DNA of 64,000 bases, from sequence record PP885688.1, one strand, 5' to 3'. Shown here in pieces: positions 697 through 60,905 of the stretch (position 1 is its first letter; each line of letters opens with the position of its first letter). A model generated the notes under the pieces. The model had not been told where the DNA came from. It was given only the letters and a program-made list of their open reading frames with translations, and did not search any database. A program made the translations under genes and the position numbers.

Positions 697-752
697 GGTG
701 AGACCTCGTGCTGGAGGTCGGCTGCACCAAAACGCATCGGCCTCTCCATGGC

Positions 753-788
753 TAATACCCACGCGAGAGGCCGATCCTGGATTATCGA
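753..788 (-). promoter_or_regulatory. Class I bipartite promoter motif
   Basis: TCGATAATCCAG-N16-GGGTATTA upstream of the phosphoesterase. Confidence 0.75.
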
Positions 789-12256: not shown

Positions 12257-12262
12257 TTGGGC

Positions 12263-12298
12263 TAATACCCAAGCGACCCTCGTTTACCTGATTATTGA
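12263..12298 (-). promoter_or_regulatory. Class I promoter motif, leaderless geometry
   Basis: TCAATAATCAGG-N16-GGGTATTA, 6 nt before the GTG. Confidence 0.8.
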
Positions 12299-12618: not shown

Positions 12619-13110
12619 TTACCGCTCGTAGCCGCCGTACCCCTCATCGAGGTGCACGATCTTGCTGTCCGAGTCGATGCCGTCGTCGAGGAACTTCGCC
12701 ACCATCCCGACAAAGCTGTCCTCTGTCACCTGTCCGAAGAACAAGGTAAGGATTGTTGTCCGCCTGGAGCGAGGATCGTTGTCCTTTGTGTGGCACAGGC
12801 GAAGCTGGTCGTTCTCATTTGCATGGGGCGACAGGAAGAAGTACTTATCCCCGACGGTGAACTGTGCCTCGAAGCGTCCGTCGAAGTTGAGCTCTCCGGG
12901 GAAAGACGGCATTTCCTTGATCTGGTCGAACTTGATGAAGTAGAACCGGTCTTCGAGGATGTTGCAGAAGCGGTTAAAGGCCCGCTTGCGATCCTCTTTC
13001 CTACGCAGCTCTACCCGCTCTACGATCCGGATGCGCTCGTCCTTGATGGCCTCAACACGCCTGGTGACAAGAGTATCGAAGCTAGTTGTGGGGCGATCTG
13101 AGACGATCAT
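12619..13110 (-). CDS. Hypothetical protein (163 aa)
   Basis: ATGA coupling to the PEP-CTERM gene. Confidence 0.65.
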   Translation of the reverse strand: MIVSDRPTTSFDTLVTRRVEAIKDERIRIVERVELRRKEDRKRAFNRFCNILEDRFYFIKFDQIKEMPSFPGELNFDGRFEAQFTVGDKYFFLSPHANENDQLRLCHTKDNDPRSRRTTILTLFFGQVTEDSFVGMVAKFLDDGIDSDSKIVHLDEGYGGYER

Positions 13111-13703
13111 GCGCGTATCTTTCTCACTGCAAGCTTGATGGTGCCGATCAGGCCAGTGCCGAGAAGCATCCAGGTGGACGGCTCGGGCGTAGGAGCGATC
13201 GGCGTTGTCGGAGGGCGGCTGGGAGTACTTGCGCCACCAATAGCTGTGGCGAAGTTGCTGAAGCCGGTAGAGACGGCCTGTCCACTGGTACTATCCGAGA
13301 CGCCGTACTCAGCTATGTCGGCCACATCAGGGATCCCGTCCGCACTGGTATCTGCAGCAAAGGGGAGGTCCGGGAGCTCAACATCCTCTGACGCGATCAT
13401 GACGTCCGTGTCCGCATCGATGGTGGCGAGCGGAGCGCAGGCCTTGTTGAAGTGGATGAGCGTCTGTTTCCGCGACATCTTTGGTCCCTTGGGAAGCGGC
13501 TTACCTTCGGCGAGCAGCTTCTTGTTGTAAACCGCCCAGGCGAGCAGGGTCGCAGCAGAGTGTTTGACCTTCTGGCTGACAACGGTGTAGCCGACGTGGC
13601 AGGCCTCTTCGGCTTGGCCTTTGAGTGGGTCCATGCTGAGGGCGATGAGGAACATGGAGAGGACGATGAACGGAGCCCGTAACTTGCGCAGGAAGGAAAC
13701 CAT
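13107..13703 (-). CDS. PEP-CTERM sorting-domain exported protein
   Basis: N-terminal signal peptide; C-terminus PTPEPSTWMLLGTGLIGTIKLAVRKIRA (PEP, TM helix, basic tail). Confidence 0.9.
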   Translation of the reverse strand: MVSFLRKLRAPFIVLSMFLIALSMDPLKGQAEEACHVGYTVVSQKVKHSAATLLAWAVYNKKLLAEGKPLPKGPKMSRKQTLIHFNKACAPLATIDADTDVMIASEDVELPDLPFAADTSADGIPDVADIAEYGVSDSTSGQAVSTGFSNFATAIGGASTPSRPPTTPIAPTPEPSTWMLLGTGLIGTIKLAVRKIRA

Positions 13704-13709
13704 GTTTGG

Positions 13710-13745
13710 TAATACCCAAACGGAGGCCGCTTCCTGGATTATTAT
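13710..13745 (-). promoter_or_regulatory. Class I promoter motif, leaderless geometry
   Basis: ATAATAATCCAG-N16-GGGTATTA, 6 nt before the ATG. Confidence 0.8.
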
Positions 13746-14518
13746 TTTTCCTTTTTTGCGATAAGTGTTTCGGACACTCCCGACGGCAACCCGTGTGCAT
13801 TCTCCAGTGCCCTACGCTGCAGGGCTGTCCCACCCCTGAAACCTCTAAGGTGAGGTCCCGATCTAACTTCCATTGGAATGTGAGAGAACAGGTGAGGGTG
13901 CGAATTCAGGGCTTGTCCTAACCCCACTGCATCATTTTTGATGAACCAGCCAATGGTCTTGAGAGAACCACCGTTTGAGTCGGCGATACTTTCTGCGATG
14001 GGTACCCAGTCTGCAGGGCGCTTATATCCTTGCCTCGGAAGATGTTTGAATGCATCTGGGTTTTTGGCAACTATGTGTATCAGCCCGGGGTAACCATTCT
14101 GGGCCAGCCAAGTTGTACTTGGCATGAACCCGGAGTTTTCTGTGGCGAGTTTTTCAGCCTCCACCACCCAGTCAGACACTGATCTGAATCGGCGATCTTG
14201 CACCAAGTGATTGAATAGCTCGGGGCAATTCCTGACAACCACAGCAAGGCCACTGTAACCATTCTGCTTCAGCCATTTTTGATTATGAAGAACGCCGTTG
14301 TTGTCTGCGGCCAAACCGTTGGCAACAGAGACCCATTCTTTAGGGGTGCGTTTCACCCGTCCCCTAGTACGAAGTTTGTGAGGCTCCCAATCGAAGTTCG
14401 GATACCTACCTTCAACCACCGCGATCTGCTCTTTAGTCAGAAGCCCTTCCCGTTTTTGGTACCGCAAACGTGAGAAGTATCCGTTTATCTCTAGCCGTGT
14501 CTTCCGGTCTGTGCTCAC
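13742..14518 (-). CDS. Repeat protein: helicase-associated-like N-motif plus 3 x ~55-aa repeats
   Basis: EGLLTKEQIAVVEGRYPNFDW, then three W..AE.LA..N.G.L...WL..NGY.GL.....P..F.HL units; paralog of the next gene. Confidence 0.75.
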   Translation of the reverse strand: MSTDRKTRLEINGYFSRLRYQKREGLLTKEQIAVVEGRYPNFDWEPHKLRTRGRVKRTPKEWVSVANGLAADNNGVLHNQKWLKQNGYSGLAVVVRNCPELFNHLVQDRRFRSVSDWVVEAEKLATENSGFMPSTTWLAQNGYPGLIHIVAKNPDAFKHLPRQGYKRPADWVPIAESIADSNGGSLKTIGWFIKNDAVGLGQALNSHPHLFSHIPMEVRSGPHLRGFRGGTALQRRALENAHGLPSGVSETLIAKKEK

Positions 14519-15597
14519 GCAGCCTCCGACGCGCCGATTGTCACGCCAAACTTGATCTCCAGAGCACGACGCTGCTCCGGCGTACCGTCACGGAACTTCT
14601 TGATGCCACCGCCGCCCTTATGAGCCACGATCTTGGGGATATGCGCAAAGGTCGCGGGGTCCGTGCTGAGGCGAGACGACAACGCCGCATGTGTTTTCTG
14701 GAGGGTACTGATCATAGGCAACGCTCCACCGTTCGCCTCTGCTAGCTGCTCAGCCATATGGGCGGCCTCTTGCTTGGACATCAACAAAGTCTCACGGTTG
14801 ATGTGTGCGAAGGCCTCGGGGTGTTTGTTGATCTTGGTCGCAAGTGTTCTGTGCCCTAGCGTGGCCAGCTTTGAGAAGGGGGGCAGCTTCCCGTGTTCCT
14901 TGGCCAAGTCCTCAGCCATCTTGACATACTCGGGGAGTGACTTCTGAGCCGACTCCACTCGTTGTAGATGAGCGAAGAGATCTGGATAGGTGTTCATGCA
15001 GGCGATGAGCCCCGCCAGGCCTTTCGCCATGAGTGCTGAGTGGGCTGGGACGACACCGTTGTTCTCCCGTGCCAGCTCCTCGGCGACGGGGACCCACTCG
15101 GCCCGCTTCTTGAAGTGGCCTTGTGGCTTATCCTGCGGGATATGTTTGAAGGCGTCGGGGTGCTTCCGCATCATAGCGGACAGGCCGATGTAGTTGTTGG
15201 TCAGGAGCCACCGGTCAGAGGGTAGGTTGCCACCTTTCTCAGCCGCCAACTTCTCAGCTGAGAGAACGTGATCTTGATAGTTCAGGACCCGGACCCGATC
15301 CTGTTTAATGTGCGCGAACTCTTCTGGAAATTTACACATCCTCGACACCAGTGATGCATAGCCGTTCTTCTGGAGCCAACCGGAACCCTGGAGCAGGCCG
15401 CCGTTCTCTGCTGCCAACTGTTCGGCAACCTTGACCCACTTTTCCGTGGTCCGATTATTAGCCCGTGGAGCCCAGTCCCAATCGGGGTACCTGGTCTCTA
15501 CGACGGCGATCTGCTGCTTCGTGAGGTGGCCCGAATGGTAACGCACACGTAGGTGAGCGAAGTAGCTATGGAGTTGTTCTTTGGTAAGGGTTTCCAT
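14515..15597 (-). CDS. Repeat protein: helicase-associated-like N-motif plus 5 x ~55-aa repeats
   Basis: SGHLTKQQIAVVETRYPDWDW, five repeats, and a C-terminal FRDGTPEQRRALE motif shared with the paralog. Confidence 0.75.
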   Translation of the reverse strand: METLTKEQLHSYFAHLRVRYHSGHLTKQQIAVVETRYPDWDWAPRANNRTTEKWVKVAEQLAAENGGLLQGSGWLQKNGYASLVSRMCKFPEEFAHIKQDRVRVLNYQDHVLSAEKLAAEKGGNLPSDRWLLTNNYIGLSAMMRKHPDAFKHIPQDKPQGHFKKRAEWVPVAEELARENNGVVPAHSALMAKGLAGLIACMNTYPDLFAHLQRVESAQKSLPEYVKMAEDLAKEHGKLPPFSKLATLGHRTLATKINKHPEAFAHINRETLLMSKQEAAHMAEQLAEANGGALPMISTLQKTHAALSSRLSTDPATFAHIPKIVAHKGGGGIKKFRDGTPEQRRALEIKFGVTIGASEAA

Positions 15598-15599
15598 GA

Positions 15600-17525
15600 C
15601 TACGCCTGCACCCGGCTCTTCGCCTTACCCTTGTTGGCCATCTGGTCGCGGAGGTCCGCCTTGGCGAGGAAATCCGCCTGCCATGCCTCGAAGCCCGCGT
15701 CGAATACTTCACGCAGCTTGCGGAGGTCGCGCTCAGCATACTCACCAACGAAGGCGACCGAGCGGTCCGACTCGCTGACAACTTCCATCAGTTTGTCGAA
15801 GGATGCGGAGACGAAAGATACGTCGATACCCTTCATGCGCAGGGTGTCGGCCTGATTGCGGTGACCAGCCAGCCAGCAGCGTCCCAGGAACGTGTTCGCA
15901 GCTATTGCGATCTCACGCTTGAAGTCGCCGACCTCGTGCTCGTCGAGGACACTGGCGATCGCTGCATGGATCAAGTTCGAATCCGTGCGCTTCTCGACCG
16001 GGATGCTCTCGACTTCGGTGATGAGGTCGCGCTTGAAGGCGAGGTACGAGATCCCCTGCTCTTCGAGAGTCGTCTGGAGGGTGCGGGTGGCGGATCCCGA
16101 TGAGCGGGGAGCGCCGGGGAGGGAAGGGAGCAACACAGGGTGGAAGCCCTCGTCGAACTGCATGCACACCAGCAGTGCATTGGTGCGGTTGGCGAGGATG
16201 TCCTTGATGCTGTCATCCTTCGAGGGCTCAGCGAACTCAGGGATGTAGTTGAAGACGCGGACGACTTCCTTGTGAGGAGCGAAGCGGCGGAATGGGCGGC
16301 CCATGGTCTGGACGGCGAGGGTGATGCTGCCCTCGATCGCGAGGTTATGAAGGCGGGAGCAGGGGCACCAGTCCGTACCTTCACGGCCCAGCATGCAGGT
16401 AACGACGACGCGATACGTCGGCTGACCATCGGCAGGCTTCTTCGGCTCCGCCAGCAGCTTAGCCTTGTTCGTATCCTGCGTCGACTTAGTCACCAGATCA
16501 AGGACCTGGGGCTCACCGTTGACCGGCGGGAACATCTTGTTGAGACGGCGGAGCAGCTCCTCGTGCTCGGTGCCGCCGGTACGCCACTTGCGAGTCGTCG
16601 CGGGGATGATTACCATGTGGCGCTCGTTGGGTTCGGACATGATCCGGTTGAAGCAGCTCATGATCGGATTGCCGTCGTACTGGACATACTCCAGGGCGAA
16701 CTCACGGATGCCGAGAGTGACCCAGTGATCGAAGAAGGGGAGATAGTAGACCGTGAACAGCTTTCCGATCTTGCCGGAGAGCATATCCGCCTGGTCGCCA
16801 CGGAAGGGAGTCGCCGTCGTGAGCACCAGCTTGGTGGTCTTCGAGCGGTGAGCGACGATGAAGGCGCAGATACGACCGAGGTTGTTAGCCTCCTCGCGGT
16901 CGTCACGCTCTTCCTGCGAGGTGAGCAGCTCATCCTTCAGGTGGAAGACGTTGCTGATGTGGTGGGCCTCGTCAACGCGCAGAGTGAGGTTCTTGATGGC
17001 AAGCATCCGCTCGTCTTCGGTCATCCGGCTCCATGCAATCGAGAGTGCGGTGTGAGAGGTGACGGCGATCATGCCGGTGATGGTCTTCGTGCCGCTGATG
17101 CCGGGGGCGAGGATGTTGGCCGGGGTGAGCATCCAGTAGATGAGGCGGGCGATGACGTCATTGTCGAAGACGCTGAGGAAGCGCTGGTTGGGGTGTACAT
17201 ACCACTTGTAGGCGCTGCCATCGAGGAACACGGTCTCGTCTACGAAACCGGCGTGAATGTGCGCCTGGGGGACGATCACCAGCTGCTTCTGCTTGAACTT
17301 GCTCTGGACGATGTCATAGGTGCCGAGGGTCAGCTGCAGATACGACTTGCCGCTGCCGCAGAAGGCGACCACGAGAGAGAGCAGCGCGTCCTTGACCTGG
17401 CTGAACGCGTCGGTCTGCCATGCACGCATTCCCCGTTCGATCGCATCGGGGGCCTGCCAGTTAGAGTTGTGACCGTTGACAGAGAAGTTTGAAGTGTTCG
17501 AAATATTCAGGGTAGTGCCAGACAT
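15600..17525 (-). CDS. Superfamily 2 (DExH-box) helicase-like ATPase, ResIII-like
   Basis: AFCGSGKS (I), VDEAHH (II), TATPFRGD (III), MLGREGTDW (V), QTMGRPFR (VI). Confidence 0.85.
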   Translation of the reverse strand: MSGTTLNISNTSNFSVNGHNSNWQAPDAIERGMRAWQTDAFSQVKDALLSLVVAFCGSGKSYLQLTLGTYDIVQSKFKQKQLVIVPQAHIHAGFVDETVFLDGSAYKWYVHPNQRFLSVFDNDVIARLIYWMLTPANILAPGISGTKTITGMIAVTSHTALSIAWSRMTEDERMLAIKNLTLRVDEAHHISNVFHLKDELLTSQEERDDREEANNLGRICAFIVAHRSKTTKLVLTTATPFRGDQADMLSGKIGKLFTVYYLPFFDHWVTLGIREFALEYVQYDGNPIMSCFNRIMSEPNERHMVIIPATTRKWRTGGTEHEELLRRLNKMFPPVNGEPQVLDLVTKSTQDTNKAKLLAEPKKPADGQPTYRVVVTCMLGREGTDWCPCSRLHNLAIEGSITLAVQTMGRPFRRFAPHKEVVRVFNYIPEFAEPSKDDSIKDILANRTNALLVCMQFDEGFHPVLLPSLPGAPRSSGSATRTLQTTLEEQGISYLAFKRDLITEVESIPVEKRTDSNLIHAAIASVLDEHEVGDFKREIAIAANTFLGRCWLAGHRNQADTLRMKGIDVSFVSASFDKLMEVVSESDRSVAFVGEYAERDLRKLREVFDAGFEAWQADFLAKADLRDQMANKGKAKSRVQA

Positions 17526-17574
17526 TTTTTCTTATCCTCGTAAAAGTGCCACTCTTGTGGCGACTGATACTGGT

Positions 17575-17610
17575 TGATACCCAAAAAAGCTTTCCGACCC
17601 TGAATATCAA
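17575..17610 (-). promoter_or_regulatory. Class I promoter motif
   Basis: TTGATATTCAGG-N16-GGGTATCA upstream of the helicase operon. Confidence 0.75.
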
Positions 17611-17656: not shown

Positions 17657-17684
17657 AAAGGCCCGCCGAAATACAGGCGGGCTT
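17657..17684 (-). terminator. Intrinsic terminator
   Basis: GCCCGCC/GGCGGGC stem followed by TTTC on the minus strand. Confidence 0.6.
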
Positions 17685-20888: not shown

Positions 20889-21460
20889 GAGGTGGCCTCG
20901 GTGGTGCAGCAGGGTTCGTGCAGCATGTTGCTCTTCATCCCGCAGGCCTTATGCTCACCGTATTCCGGTGTGTGACAGAGGCACGTGCAGGTGGGTGCGG
21001 TCTTCGGGATAAGAGCGAGGATCTCATTACCGCGAACCTCGTAGAGGTGGGCTACGTCGTAGCAGTTGGTCTCGATGACGGTGCGAGCGAGGCGTGCGGC
21101 GCTGAAGCATACCTCGGCGGCGTCCTTGACTCCGGCGTTGTAGTTCGCGACGCGGCGCTCTGCTTCTACCTGGTTCGTCTTGGCACGATGGGCTGCGATC
21201 TCACTCAGAGCTGCACGGATTGCGATGACGTCGAACTGGCTCAGGATGTGTTCGTGGACCCCGGCTGCCATACGTGCGAGCCGTTGGATCTGATCGGCGG
21301 ACGTCGTAGCCCGCATCTTCTCCTCGTACTCTTCTCGCCGCTTCTTCGTTTCCTCTTCGTAGCCAGGTGTGGGAGCGCCGCTCAGAAAGCGGGCTAACCC
21401 TTCGGGCGTCGGGTCTCCCGCGACGTTGATCTCGTGACGTGCGTACTTTGGAATGCGCAT
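20885..21460 (-). CDS. Hypothetical protein (191 aa)
   Basis: TGATG coupling to the ligase C-half. Confidence 0.65.
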   Translation of the reverse strand: MRIPKYARHEINVAGDPTPEGLARFLSGAPTPGYEEETKKRREEYEEKMRATTSADQIQRLARMAAGVHEHILSQFDVIAIRAALSEIAAHRAKTNQVEAERRVANYNAGVKDAAEVCFSAARLARTVIETNCYDVAHLYEVRGNEILALIPKTAPTCTCLCHTPEYGEHKACGMKSNMLHEPCCTTEATS

Positions 21461-22413
21461 CAGTCCGCCCACTCCACATCAAGGCCACCACCGGCGGCCT
21501 TGAGTCCGTACTTCACAAATTGCTCATTGATCCAGTCAGTGTCGAAGTTGGGGATGTTGAGTTCCTTCGCCTTCTTCAACTTCGTCGCGCCGGGCTCGGT
21601 GCCGACGAGGAGGTGTGTTACCTTCTTCGTCACGCCACTCTTCGAGACCGCGCCCAACTTCACGAGCTGGTTGGTGATGTACTCACGGCTGCCGATCTCG
21701 TAGAACTCACCGGTGATGCAGAAGGCAACGCCCGCCAGAGGGGAACCCTCGACGACCGTGGGCTGCTCAATCGGAGTCGGGCGTACGCCTGCAGAGTAGA
21801 GACGCTGACAGATCAGCGAACCCTCGGCGTCGAGCGCGAACTTGTTCAGTTCTGCCCGCTTGTGGAAGCCGATTCCCTCGATCTCCTTGATCTCCTGCAC
21901 CAGTCCAGGCAGATACAGCTTTGCCGGAAGTGTGAGCATGCCCTCAGAGGTGAGCTTGTGTTCCTTGGCGATCACCTTACCGAGAGTGATGCCGATCATC
22001 GGAATACCAAGGGCACCGATCCAGCGATCCCACCCGGCAGTCTTTGCACGCTCAGCGGTCTCGATCATGTTGAGGATCGCGGCGGCGGCGAGACCACGCT
22101 TACGCATGACAGCAGAGAACTTCTCCTCACCGTGTTTCTCCAGGGCAGCCGCGCATTCGTTGAGGAACTCAAAGAGGTCCGCGATGTTGGTGATGTAGCC
22201 AGCCTTCGCGAGCGTCGCAGCCATCTCAGGCCCAAGACCTTCGATCTCCAGCAGCTTGCGGTCGGCGATGTAGGTGAGCATGTCGGCAACGCGGCCAGCA
22301 CAGAGAGTGTTCTCGCACCAGTGAGTGATGATCTGAGACTTGGGCTCGGTGTATTCGACGATGACGGAGCCGCAGTCCGGGCAGAGTGTGGGGGCGTTGA
22401 TAGGGGTTGTCAT
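21460..22413 (-). CDS. ligA: NAD-dependent DNA ligase, C-terminal half (Zn finger, HhH, BRCT)
   Basis: CPDCGS...WCENTLC zinc finger; IEGLGPE, ALGIPMIG and IEGIG HhH motifs; FCITG...SGVTKKVTHLLVG.EPGATKLKKAKELNI BRCT. Confidence 0.9.
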   Translation of the reverse strand: MTTPINAPTLCPDCGSVIVEYTEPKSQIITHWCENTLCAGRVADMLTYIADRKLLEIEGLGPEMAATLAKAGYITNIADLFEFLNECAAALEKHGEEKFSAVMRKRGLAAAAILNMIETAERAKTAGWDRWIGALGIPMIGITLGKVIAKEHKLTSEGMLTLPAKLYLPGLVQEIKEIEGIGFHKRAELNKFALDAEGSLICQRLYSAGVRPTPIEQPTVVEGSPLAGVAFCITGEFYEIGSREYITNQLVKLGAVSKSGVTKKVTHLLVGTEPGATKLKKAKELNIPNFDTDWINEQFVKYGLKAAGGGLDVEWAD

Positions 22414-22679: not shown

Positions 22680-22710
22680 ATCTCCTCGTCGGGCAAAGCC
22701 AGACTTTCGC

Positions 22711-22746
22711 TAATACCCTCGGAGGAGGTCGTTCCCTGAATATCGA
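22711..22746 (-). promoter_or_regulatory. Class I promoter motif
   Basis: TCGATATTCAGG-N16-GGGTATTA; would drive the FlbD-like gene and the ligase C-half. Confidence 0.8.
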
Positions 22747-25374: not shown

Positions 25375-25631
25375 TAGCGACCCCACAATTCGCGGTTCTT
25401 ACCGTACAACCGCTTGTAATAGCGCCGACGCGCGTAGGCCTGGCGCAGGGCGGACTCAACAGCATTCCGCCGAGGATCCTCCGCCTTCAGAGATCCGAGC
25501 GCCGTCCGAAATTGTGTCACCCGATAGTTCAGTTGATGGCGAAGTGACAGGCCGATTGAATAGGCATAGGTGTTGGGCCAGGGTATGTGCGTGATGATCC
25601 ACGTGGGTAGGTACTCCAGACTATTCTCCAT
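25374..25631 (-). CDS. Hypothetical basic protein (85 aa)
   Basis: Overlaps the stop of the ligase N-half. Confidence 0.6.
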   Translation of the reverse strand: MENSLEYLPTWIITHIPWPNTYAYSIGLSLRHQLNYRVTQFRTALGSLKAEDPRRNAVESALRQAYARRRYYKRLYGKNRELWGR

Positions 25632-26763
25632 CGAGCACCGCTGTGATCTGCGGGATCACATCCCCGCTGCGCACGACCTCGACACGGCTTCCGATCTCGA
25701 GTTTCATTGCACGGATCCACGAGAGGTTGTTCAGCGTCACACGCTCGATGCTGGCACCGGCGAGAATCACCGGCTCGATCACACCGACCGGCGTCAGCTT
25801 GCCCTGGCGGCCTACCTGCCAGATGACGTCGAGCAGGACACTCTCGCTCTTCGCGTTCTGTGTCTTGAACGCGACCTGGAAGTTGGCGAACTTCGAACCT
25901 AGGCCTAGCTCGCGACGGCGGGCACAGCTGTCGATCTTGATGACGATACCGTCGCGACCGATCTCCTCATCCTTGTTGTCGAGCAGCTTGACGAACTTAG
26001 CCAGCTGAGCCAGCAGCTCCGTCGCATTGGCGACTGCGACATCGTCCGGTGCGTCGAAGCCAAACAGAATCAAGTCACTAAGGCGAGTGGAGGCGGAGTC
26101 ACCTGATTCGATGGATGAGTCGAGTAGGGGAGCGATGACCTCCCACGGCTTGAACTGAATGTCGCGCTTCTTGACCTCTTGGAGATCCTTCAGCTTCATG
26201 GTTCCGGCGACAAGGTTGCGCGTCGACATGTACGGCTTGCCTCCTGCCGCCACGATCTCCGCGTTCAGCTTGGCAAGGGTTGACTGCTTCATCACCAGCT
26301 CGCCACGGATCTCGAGGTCGATGCCGTAGCCGATTTCGTTGGGGATGGCGAAGATCACCTGGACTTGGGGGAGAATCGACTCACCGGCGTCGCCGTCACC
26401 GCGTGTGACTGCCTTGACCAGTTTGCCCTTCTCATAAGTGAGTGAGCAGCTGACGCCGTCATACTTCGAGCTGAGAGTCACAGTCTGACCTACGTGCCTC
26501 TTGTACCAGGTAAGGAGGTCGTCCACGCTGTAGACGTTCTCGATCGAGCGCATCGGATGAGCGTGGGGGATACGGCCACCGGCGTCGGTGCCTACGGTCG
26601 TGAGTACGGTGGCTCCGGAGGCTTGGGATGGGTTCAGCTTGACCAGTGTCGCGAGTTCAATCTCAGCCGCGTCATACTCGGCGTCGGACATGATGGGTTG
26701 ACCGGCGTAATAACTTTCTCTTGCAGCTGTCAGCTTTTGATTCAGACTTTCCACTGTTTGCAT
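25621..26763 (-). CDS. ligA: NAD-dependent DNA ligase, N-terminal half (Ia, adenylation, OB)
   Basis: YYAGQPIMSDAEYD, SSKYDG (active-site Lys), TRGDG, EIRGE, TRNLVAG, DGIVIK, WQVGRQGKLTPV, VRSGDVIP, then a stop. Confidence 0.92.
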   Translation of the reverse strand: MQTVESLNQKLTAARESYYAGQPIMSDAEYDAAEIELATLVKLNPSQASGATVLTTVGTDAGGRIPHAHPMRSIENVYSVDDLLTWYKRHVGQTVTLSSKYDGVSCSLTYEKGKLVKAVTRGDGDAGESILPQVQVIFAIPNEIGYGIDLEIRGELVMKQSTLAKLNAEIVAAGGKPYMSTRNLVAGTMKLKDLQEVKKRDIQFKPWEVIAPLLDSSIESGDSASTRLSDLILFGFDAPDDVAVANATELLAQLAKFVKLLDNKDEEIGRDGIVIKIDSCARRRELGLGSKFANFQVAFKTQNAKSESVLLDVIWQVGRQGKLTPVGVIEPVILAGASIERVTLNNLSWIRAMKLEIGSRVEVVRSGDVIPQITAVLDGE

Positions 26764-31121: not shown

Positions 31122-31138
31122 ATCGCCCTCTCACTTGC

Positions 31139-31174
31139 TAATACCCAAGAGGAGGGTCGGTCCCTAAATATCAA
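31139..31174 (-). promoter_or_regulatory. Class I promoter motif
   Basis: TTGATATTTAGG-N16-GGGTATTA. Confidence 0.8.
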
Positions 31175-60839: not shown

Positions 60840-60869
60840 GAATGATCTCCGTTGGGAGGTACTCTTCTC

Positions 60870-60905
60870 TAATACCCACGCGGAGGGCTCGATCTTGAAT
60901 ATCGA
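60870..60905 (-). promoter_or_regulatory. Class I promoter motif
   Basis: TCGATATTCAAG-N16-GGGTATTA. Confidence 0.8.

Follow-up and report, generated by a model that had tools for sequence, protein, structure and literature searches.

The gp100-gp99-gp98 locus of phage Tunturi_5

A stretch of 64,000 nucleotides from the sequence record PP885688.1 (hereafter, the window) was analyzed around three genes, gp100, gp99 and gp98, which encode a putative helicase of superfamily 2 (SF2) and two paralogous repeat proteins. The window shows 100% identity with Tunturiibacter phage Tunturi_5, and its positions correspond to those of PP885688.1 minus 62,000. Tunturi_5 is a jumbo myovirus of 308,711 bp, isolated from Arctic tundra soil on an Acidobacteriota host (PMC11924767). 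An earlier note on this DNA, made from the letters alone, had described a three-gene module formed by a helicase and two paralogs, and the three genes were found in that arrangement, co-directional on the minus strand in the order gp100, gp99 and gp98. Relatives carry the repeats in fusion with the helicase; therefore, the trio is probably one split machine, not a defence system. The genes and their regions in the window are the following:

15600-17525, minus strand: gp100, 641 aa, SF2 ATPase/helicase (DEAHH) whose C-terminal region is helical
16236-17438, minus strand: gp100 helicase core, approximately residues 30-430, with motifs Q, I, II, III and VI
14515-15597, minus strand: gp99, 360 aa, isoelectric point (pI) 9.5, with a helicase-associated (HA)-like N-terminal half-domain, five repeats and a cap
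15466-15597, minus strand: gp99 N-terminal two-helix motif, residues 1-44, which resembles the C-terminal half of HA
14632-15444, minus strand: gp99 repeat array, five units, residues 52-322, found by a leave-out hidden Markov model (HMM) at E 8e-26 to 1.4e-13
14548-14595, minus strand: gp99 C-terminal cap, residues 335-350, also present in gp98 and in the fused relative P0063
13742-14518, minus strand: gp98, 258 aa, pI 10.0, with the layout of gp99 but three repeats, a GTG start and low GC content at third codon positions (GC3)
13862-14344, minus strand: gp98 repeat array, three units, residues 59-219, leave-out HMM E 1.7e-23 to 8.7e-19
13793-13840, minus strand: gp98 C-terminal cap, residues 227-242

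The TAG stop codon of gp100 is followed by the 2-nt gap already described and by the ATG of gp99. The overlap between the gp99 stop and the gp98 start, which had been read as ATGA, is instead GTGA, with a GTG start codon and a GGAGG just upstream of it. The gap and the overlap suggest that translation of the three genes may be coupled.

gp100 is an SF2 helicase with intact motifs

The gp100 protein belongs to the SF2 helicase/ATPase superfamily and shows Q37, motif I (residues 57-61), a DEAHH motif II (185-189), motif III (237-239) and motif VI (406-413). In an alignment of 34 gp100-family members, residues Q37, G57/G59/K60, D185/E186/H188, T237-T239 and Q406/R410/R413 are invariant, which agrees with the DExH ATPase of 641 aa proposed in the earlier note. 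The AlphaFold2 (AF2) model of gp100, with a mean predicted local distance difference test (pLDDT) of 77, contains two RecA-like lobes and, at the C-terminus, a helical region, and Foldseek matched it to many SF2 helicases at E ~1e-8, none of the subfamilies being prominent. Neither a nuclease nor a methylase domain, both of which had been stated to be lacking, was found in gp100 by Pfam, PADLOC and NCBIfam scans or in the AF2 model, and scans of gp98, gp99 and gp100 against Pfam, PHROG, NCBIfam and PADLOC gave only weak generic helicase matches. gp100 has a pI of 6.7 and more than 150 homologs, many of them on contigs of 200-640 kb.

When the gp100-family profile was compared with the PDB sequences, the best match was UvsW of phage T4 (2OCA; E 4e-5 over ~70 residues), followed by XPB/Rad25. 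A single-sequence search gave no match. Among the helicases of Tunturi_5, which also include a UvrD/PcrA-like (gp207), an XPD-like (gp192), two SNF2-like (gp268 and gp94) and a DnaB-like (gp191) protein, gp100 is the sole UvsW/XPB-like candidate. Its membership of the UvsW family, judged by these similarities, is unproven.

gp99 and gp98 are arrays of small basic helical repeats

The gp99 and gp98 proteins are paralogs, 43% identical (E 8e-56) in an alignment that spans the N-terminal motif and the first three units. Their last three units and the C-terminal cap are matched in a second alignment, so that both ends had been rightly described as common to the two proteins. The five (gp99) and three (gp98) repeats of about 55 aa that the earlier note had recognized were also recovered, with a period of 54-58 aa. 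The best self-alignment scores were 124 for gp99 and 112 for gp98, in relation to means of 26-28 and maxima of 39-40 in 200 shuffles (z = 25 and z = 22, respectively), and an HMM constructed with 94 units of other proteins recovered all eight units, with E values between 8e-26 and 1.4e-13. Seven columns are invariant across the eight units, which are mutually only 25-46% identical, and no tandem repeat was detected at the DNA level in the two genes; therefore, the duplications are old. In the AF2 model of gp99 (mean pLDDT of 82, predicted template modeling score of 0.44), two N-terminal helices precede the five units, each of which consists of four short helices.

All of the approximately 50 repeat proteins tabulated, which belong to four repeat families (Tunturi type or T, A, B and D), are basic, with pI values of 9.2-11.4. 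Across 102 units, conservation is lowest in two groups of columns, formed by the three residues that directly follow the turn and by three positions of helix 3. The units of locus L002 are nearly identical and their differences fall at these same columns. Such clustering fits a predicted ligand-contacting surface, whatever the ligand might be. Code readers such as the transcription activator-like effectors (TALE) have near-identical repeats that differ at a few specificity positions, a feature that the divergent units of gp98 and gp99 do not show; the L002 units are much more alike, with differences concentrated at the positions most variable in the whole family.

Helicase and repeats are linked in related loci

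We searched 24 distinct phage-type loci containing a gp100-family helicase for tandem repeats, with HMMs of the repeats and a scan for self-similarity. In 21 of them, such repeats, of 55-75 aa, were found fused to the helicase or adjoining it and, where not fused, they are distributed in one to five adjacent genes. According to their position, the loci are arranged as follows:

Repeat genes downstream of the helicase: L002, L008, L009, L010, L014, L017, L019, L022, L024, L045 and Tunturi_5
Repeat genes upstream of the helicase: L013, L016 and L036
Repeats fused to the helicase C-terminus: L011, L015, L023, L025, L026, L027 and L029 (P0063)

No repeats were detected by either procedure at L012, L018 and L020. 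The nearest helicase relative with genomic context, L008 (49% identity), shows the helicase followed by two Tunturi-type repeat genes. The alignment between gp100 and the fused protein P0063, of 877 aa, spans residues 43-612 at 38.5% identity, and residues 643-873 of P0063 are collinear with the entire gp98, including the N-terminal motif, the three repeats and the cap (32.5% identity, E 9e-34). No separate repeat gene follows P0063 on its contig.

Repeat number, whose variation the earlier note had proposed as a check, differs between relatives, and repeat family differs as well. At least five repeat families occupy the slot beside the helicase: the Tunturi type (T), the widespread type A, types B and D, and HNH_repeat. 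Mixed loci were also found, with A and B in L022, B and T in L024, and HNH_repeat, T and B in L045. In L002-L004, a repeat open reading frame (ORF) of 123 aa and then an out-of-frame repeat fragment lie between repeat genes of 432 and 223 aa, and both may derive from one repeat gene broken at a single point.

In at least 14 related loci, a protein of ~200 aa, which gave no match in Pfam, PHROG or NCBIfam, adjoins the helicase or its repeat genes. The products of gp101, gp102, gp103, gp96 and gp97, which lie around the trio, are unrelated to it.

Partner protein of ~200 aa: L009 5393-5992; L010 5288-6004; L002 8669-9244; L045 3574-4206; L036 2251-2850; and others

A pattern-limited scan of 185,579 species genomes gave seven loci of the helicase family in cellular genomes, five of them from Planctomycetota. 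The Planctomycetota helicases have ~750 aa and end in two C-terminal 63-aa repeats of yet another type. In L028, the helicase stands at one edge of a group of genes without annotation.

Planctomycetota helicase loci (chromosomal subclass): L028, L037, L038, L040 and L042

Tunturi-type repeats in other proteins

A full HMMER search with the gp98/gp99 family profile gave 768 cluster representatives, 302 of them at E <=1e-30, while a word-indexed search with the same family gave only 15. Of the 26 representatives of at least 600 aa among the top 150, 22 carry an N-terminal gp100-family helicase together with the Tunturi-type repeats, and P0150, P0195 and P0215 are among the rest. A single repeat protein used as a query found no match in IMG/VR, and tblastn against 50,697 GenBank phage records matched gp99 and gp100, each, only to Tunturi_5 itself.

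The same repeats are found in other DNA enzymes. P0150 (1091 aa) shows Mrr nuclease, ResIII and Helicase_C domains followed by eight Tunturi-type repeats, and its first 600 residues match the PADLOC models of type IIG/type I restriction enzymes (E 1.6e-104). The repeats stand where those models continue beyond the matched part, which we take to be the site of the methyltransferase and target-recognition domains in such restriction enzymes, and this location suggests a DNA-recognition role for the repeats. P0150 resembles the Mrr/SF2/methyltransferase/target-recognition enzymes (REase_MTase_IIG and REase_MTase_I) in its nuclease-plus-motor part; in contrast, the Tunturi_5 trio has neither nuclease nor methyltransferase, and gp100 belongs to another helicase family. 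P0195 shows four HNH_repeat units and then six Tunturi-type units, P0215 shows one and six, respectively, and P0015, which came from the word-indexed search, combines one Tunturi-type unit with a resolvase helix-turn-helix (HTH). The presence of HNH_repeat and Tunturi-type units in one chain is an association and not family membership.

Tunturi_5 encodes a third paralog, gp48, outside the window (PP885688.1 44490-45368, plus strand), with 292 aa, five units and a pI of 9.5. This protein has neither the N-terminal motif nor the cap, and it is labelled DNA helicase though it shows no ATPase motifs.

The GenBank record gives the label DNA helicase to gp98, gp99 and gp100; the labels come from Phold (Foldseek), by which the three proteins were assigned to PHROG 16 (PMC11924767, supplement). 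No ATPase motifs were found in gp98 or gp99, and their label is an over-annotation. It probably arose through a match to the repeat-bearing tail of a fused protein, since proteins with a helicase followed by repeats exist. The small ORF gp43 bears the same label and is not a repeat protein.

Similarity to known repeat families

The earlier note had compared the N-terminal motif with the HA domain (PF03457). Neither the whole gp98 and gp99 proteins nor their N-terminal pieces match PF03457 in Pfam (gathering score 28.4 bits), but the comparison finds support in intermediates. Proteins at the same position in L009 and L010 match positions 29-63 of PF03457 below the threshold (18.6-21.3 bits, E 3.5e-4 to 2e-3), and the fused gp100-family member L023 bears a true HA domain (64 bits against PF03457), which matches PDB 2KTA. 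In hhalign, the N-terminal motifs of the Tunturi lineage aligned with the L009/L010 segments and the L023 HA domain with a probability of 95.8% (E 8e-9, 38 columns), a value to be read as an upper bound because the segments were preselected by their common pattern, which inflates the score. Thus, by profile similarity, the N-terminal motif does appear to relate to the C-terminal half of HA, only through these intermediates. HA helicases and the trio have in common short helical modules, often in several copies, after an SF2 helicase, and in L023 the HA domains follow the repeats; however, the Tunturi-type unit shows no PF03457 match (1.9% probability against HA units in hhalign), the modules of Tunturi_5 are encoded by separate paralogous genes, and the HA domain itself has no established role.

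The repeat unit had also been likened to HNH_repeat (PF18780). As in HNH_repeat and INT_rpt (PF14882), the units are tandem, of ~55-60 aa, and attached to DNA enzymes; in P0195 and P0215 the Tunturi-type repeats come after HNH_repeat units, in L045 both kinds of unit belong to one operon, and one type-B fusion, with its repeat at the same helicase position, gives a weak sub-threshold INT_rpt match. While this co-occurrence stands, homology of the unit is not demonstrable: no Pfam match to HNH_repeat was found, hhalign gave a probability of 1.7% (E 0.029) over the first 23 columns only, profile similarity to neither family is significant, and the trio has no nuclease or integrase. The searched copies of Pfam, PHROG and NCBIfam contain no model of the Tunturi-type repeat, the only Pfam trace being a faint, precomputed, sub-threshold match to Tyr_recomb_halo_N (PF26683), and the matches of the repeat profile with PDB sequences were spurious. 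The literature consulted on the HA, HNH_repeat and INT_rpt families and on repeat-bearing jumbo-phage helicases yielded no functional study, and no curated family or paper describing the module was found. No defence model matches the module, which the earlier note had put forward as a candidate undescribed system.

Transcription signals, composition and neighbouring genes

The intergenic gap upstream of gp100 has 181 nt and opens with a hairpin after gp101. Two features were located in it, and one of their elements recurs across the window:

17661-17682, minus strand: terminator-like GC hairpin just past the gp101 stop codon, with seven G-C pairs and a loop of 8 nt
17575-17608, minus strand: bipartite promoter-like motif, ~50 nt upstream of the gp100 ATG, recurring elsewhere in the window
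751-760, 12261-12270, 13708-13717, 22709-22718, 31137-31146, 60868-60877 and eight more, minus strand: copies of the GGGTATTAGC element with at most one mismatch

The hairpin is likely the upstream boundary of the transcription unit, which is suggestive only, as such sites are not enriched in the region over shuffled sequences. The bipartite motif comprises an upstream element that starts at 17608 and, ~14 nt downstream of it, a GGGTATTAGC-like element. Five such pairs occur in the window, the others being upstream of genes at 22744, 24896, 31172 and 60903, and the second element, of 10 nt, has 14 copies, all on the minus strand, in relation to 1.19 expected by chance. This recurring motif is probably what had been called a class I promoter, and its promoter function is putative; a scan with the sigma-70 consensus found no promoter upstream of gp100. 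Ahead of gp97 and gp94 the element ends 4 nt from the start codon, and if it were a -10 element, their transcripts would be nearly leaderless.

The GC3 values are 0.53 for gp98, 0.70 for gp99 and 0.82 for gp100, with a regional mean of 0.73 (standard deviation 0.065). Therefore, the A/T-rich third positions from which recent acquisition of the repeat genes had been deduced are restricted to gp98, three standard deviations below the mean, and do not extend to gp99 or to gp100.

The trio sits in a long minus-strand block of genes for DNA and nucleotide metabolism, with some structural genes interspersed, which includes an SNF2-type helicase (gp94), an HslV-like peptidase, two NAD-ligase ORFs and a thymidylate kinase. 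The two ORFs, annotated as NAD-dependent DNA ligase (21460-22413, minus strand, 317 aa; 25621-26691, minus strand, 356 aa), are ~3 kb apart and may represent a split or duplicated ligase. The next gene downstream of the trio, gp97 (13107-13703, minus strand), encodes a protein whose N-terminus is hydrophobic and which carries, at its C-terminus, a PEP-CTERM sorting motif (PF07589, 26.4 bits, cutoff 20.7); this is unusual for a phage gene. Tunturi_5 also encodes a UvsX-like recombinase, a RuvC-like resolvase, a single-stranded DNA-binding protein (SSB), a clamp and clamp loader, and sigma factors. A T4-style set of this kind has been described for group 2 jumbo phages (PMC7824862).

A probable helicase split in three genes

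We consider it probable that the trio is a single helicase split in three genes, an SF2 motor with detached nucleic-acid-binding accessory arrays, which serves phage DNA metabolism. According to this model, gp100 would be the ATP-driven motor, and gp99 and gp98 would be accessory regions detached from its C-terminus, each composed of small, basic helical modules in a row. Nucleic acid is the most likely ligand of the arrays, which would keep the motor on its DNA substrate or direct it there, with the two paralogs providing two alternative or combined substrate preferences. The module would probably serve the phage's own DNA metabolism, that is, recombination, fork or branch processing, or repair.

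The model is proposed because P0063 joins gp100 and a gp98-like tail in one chain, as a Rosetta-stone fusion, because most of the loci examined and of the long representatives link repeats to a helicase, and because L008 keeps the helicase followed by two Tunturi-type repeat genes. Nucleic-acid binding is favoured because the repeat proteins of all the families tabulated are basic while gp100 is not. The model is further supported by the presence of the repeats in the DNA enzymes P0150, P0195 and P0015, by the clustering of the most variable columns in a pattern fitting a binding surface, and by the true HA domain of L023, given that the paper on 2KTA, by its title as cited in PMC12191111, describes the HA domain as DNA-binding. 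The role in DNA metabolism is proposed because of the genomic setting, the position of gp100 as the sole UvsW/XPB-like candidate and the presence of the UvsX-like recombinase. The layout of the genes and proteins, the intact ATPase motifs, the conserved linkage, the fusions, the basic charge and the clustered variable positions are observed; that the three proteins associate physically, that the arrays bind nucleic acid, and which pathway they serve, is what we infer.

The nearest functional precedent would be UvsW and UvsW.1 of phage T4. UvsW.1 is a small helical protein encoded directly after UvsW, first read as the UvsW C-terminus and described as one unit of 76 residues (PMC1524935), and it is regarded as a potential DNA-binding partner of UvsW (PMC7824862). 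By analogy, gp99 and gp98 lie directly downstream of an SF2 helicase gene and their counterparts are fused to the helicase in relatives (P0063 and 22 others), UvsW is the best PDB sequence match of the gp100-family profile, and Tunturi_5 resembles T4 in its UvsX-like recombinase, DnaB-like helicase, clamp and clamp loader, and sigma factors. The two systems differ in that Tunturi_5 has two proteins with five and three tandem units and an extra N-terminal motif and cap, and the gp98/gp99-family profile finds no phage helicase partner among the PDB sequences at E values up to 10, so that neither UvsW.1 nor any other solved chain is matched.

Several observations weigh against a split helicase. 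The UvsW likeness of the gp100 family is weak and local, and UvsW is absent from the top 50 Foldseek matches of gp100. The gp99 model gave nothing in the PDB at E <=0.001, and its matches in BFVD were all weak (best E 0.012), headed by proteins of giant viruses that bear the names Superfamily II helicase and Helicase-associated domain-containing protein. Comparison by hhalign of families T, A, B and D, HA and HNH_repeat was significant in no pair; therefore, no common ancestry is claimed. The ~200-aa partner has no homolog anywhere in Tunturi_5, and the module is therefore not identical everywhere. Co-occurrence of repeat and helicase, which the earlier note had put forward as a check, holds for the linked loci and the fusions but not for gp48, which lies between the genes for a dUTPase and a dCMP deaminase, unlinked to a helicase; this position is kept in L044 and roughly in L007, and L005 holds a lone repeat copy. 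Finally, binding of gp98 and gp99 to gp100 or to DNA is a prediction.

Alternative explanations

The repeat arrays could be protein-protein adaptors that dock the helicase onto phage or host proteins, such as SSB, a recombinase or a polymerase, instead of contacting nucleic acid. Arrays of helical repeats often mediate protein binding, variable surface positions would fit any ligand, and the conserved ~200-aa partner of the relatives shows that further protein components exist. However, the high positive charge is uniform across unrelated repeat families, and the repeats associate exclusively with DNA enzymes (helicases, the Mrr nuclease, HNH_repeat units and the resolvase HTH). The sub-threshold matches to INT_rpt and PF26683, both recombinase-associated, also favour nucleic acid, and we regard the adaptor explanation as rather unlikely.

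The earlier note had proposed a function in defence, anti-defence or superinfection exclusion, in which the arrays would serve as sensors of foreign DNA, modified DNA or a host factor, on which the helicase would then act. Fast turnover at the helicase slot, with its several repeat families, one to five paralogs and variable unit counts, would be in agreement with such a conflict system, as would the repeats on the restriction-like Mrr nuclease-helicase P0150, the aberrant GC3 of gp98 and other conflict genes elsewhere in Tunturi_5, a DarB-like protein and a DefenseFinder hit. Nevertheless, gp98 and gp99 match no PADLOC-DB 2.0 model, gp100 gives only a weak Cas3-helicase match (E 3.9e-4) and two Cmr8 matches at E 0.043, and its fused relatives match nothing or, weakly, PbeA, type IV DinG and Cas3 (E 3.7e-5 to 5.9e-4). 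P0150, an unrelated Mrr-helicase, was the only tested protein that matched PADLOC restriction-enzyme models. No effector domain (nuclease, toxin or methylase) was found in the trio or in most related loci, and the neighbouring genes are those of DNA metabolism. The helicase is found at 30-50% identity on many large contigs (up to ~640 kb), often with the conserved partner gene, so that it looks like an inherited housekeeping module. The family is rare in cellular genomes. The defence reading is without positive support, and a conflict system is unlikely.

It is quite unlikely that gp98 and gp99 bind DNA on their own, as nucleoid-coating or regulatory proteins, and act independently of the neighbouring helicase. 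Unlinked paralogs do exist, and one of their positions is conserved (gp48, L044 and L007; also L005). In contrast, helicase fusions are frequent, adjacency to the helicase is kept in either gene order, and the N-terminal motif and cap common to gp98, gp99 and the fused P0063 are missing from gp48. Lastly, that the repeat genes are remnants of homing endonucleases that lost their nuclease part, as HNH_repeat units in the same chain or operon (P0195, P0215 and L045) might indicate, is very improbable in view of the lack of any nuclease remnant, the intact reading frames, the hundreds of cluster representatives of the family, the conserved helicase synteny and the non-significant HNH_repeat profile comparison.

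Implications

The Tunturi-type units and their sister families could constitute a modular nucleic-acid reader, an exchangeable phage-borne system for helicase targeting, a reading that we consider unlikely. Each unit would contact a short DNA stretch, with specificity provided by the three residues after the turn and the three helix 3 positions, both hypervariable, and arrays of differing length and composition would aim one motor at different sequences or DNA structures.

For the annotation of phage genomes, a correction is required in the databases, where gp98, gp99 and gp48 are labelled DNA helicase. A helicase family that is common on very large phage-like contigs (100-640 kb) is nearly always accompanied by arrays of small, basic, helical repeats. 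With at least five repeat families occupying a single genomic slot, nature offers an experiment on the retargeting of a motor protein by accessory modules. If it were true that the arrays read DNA in a modular way, they would be of interest both to phage biologists and to protein engineers.

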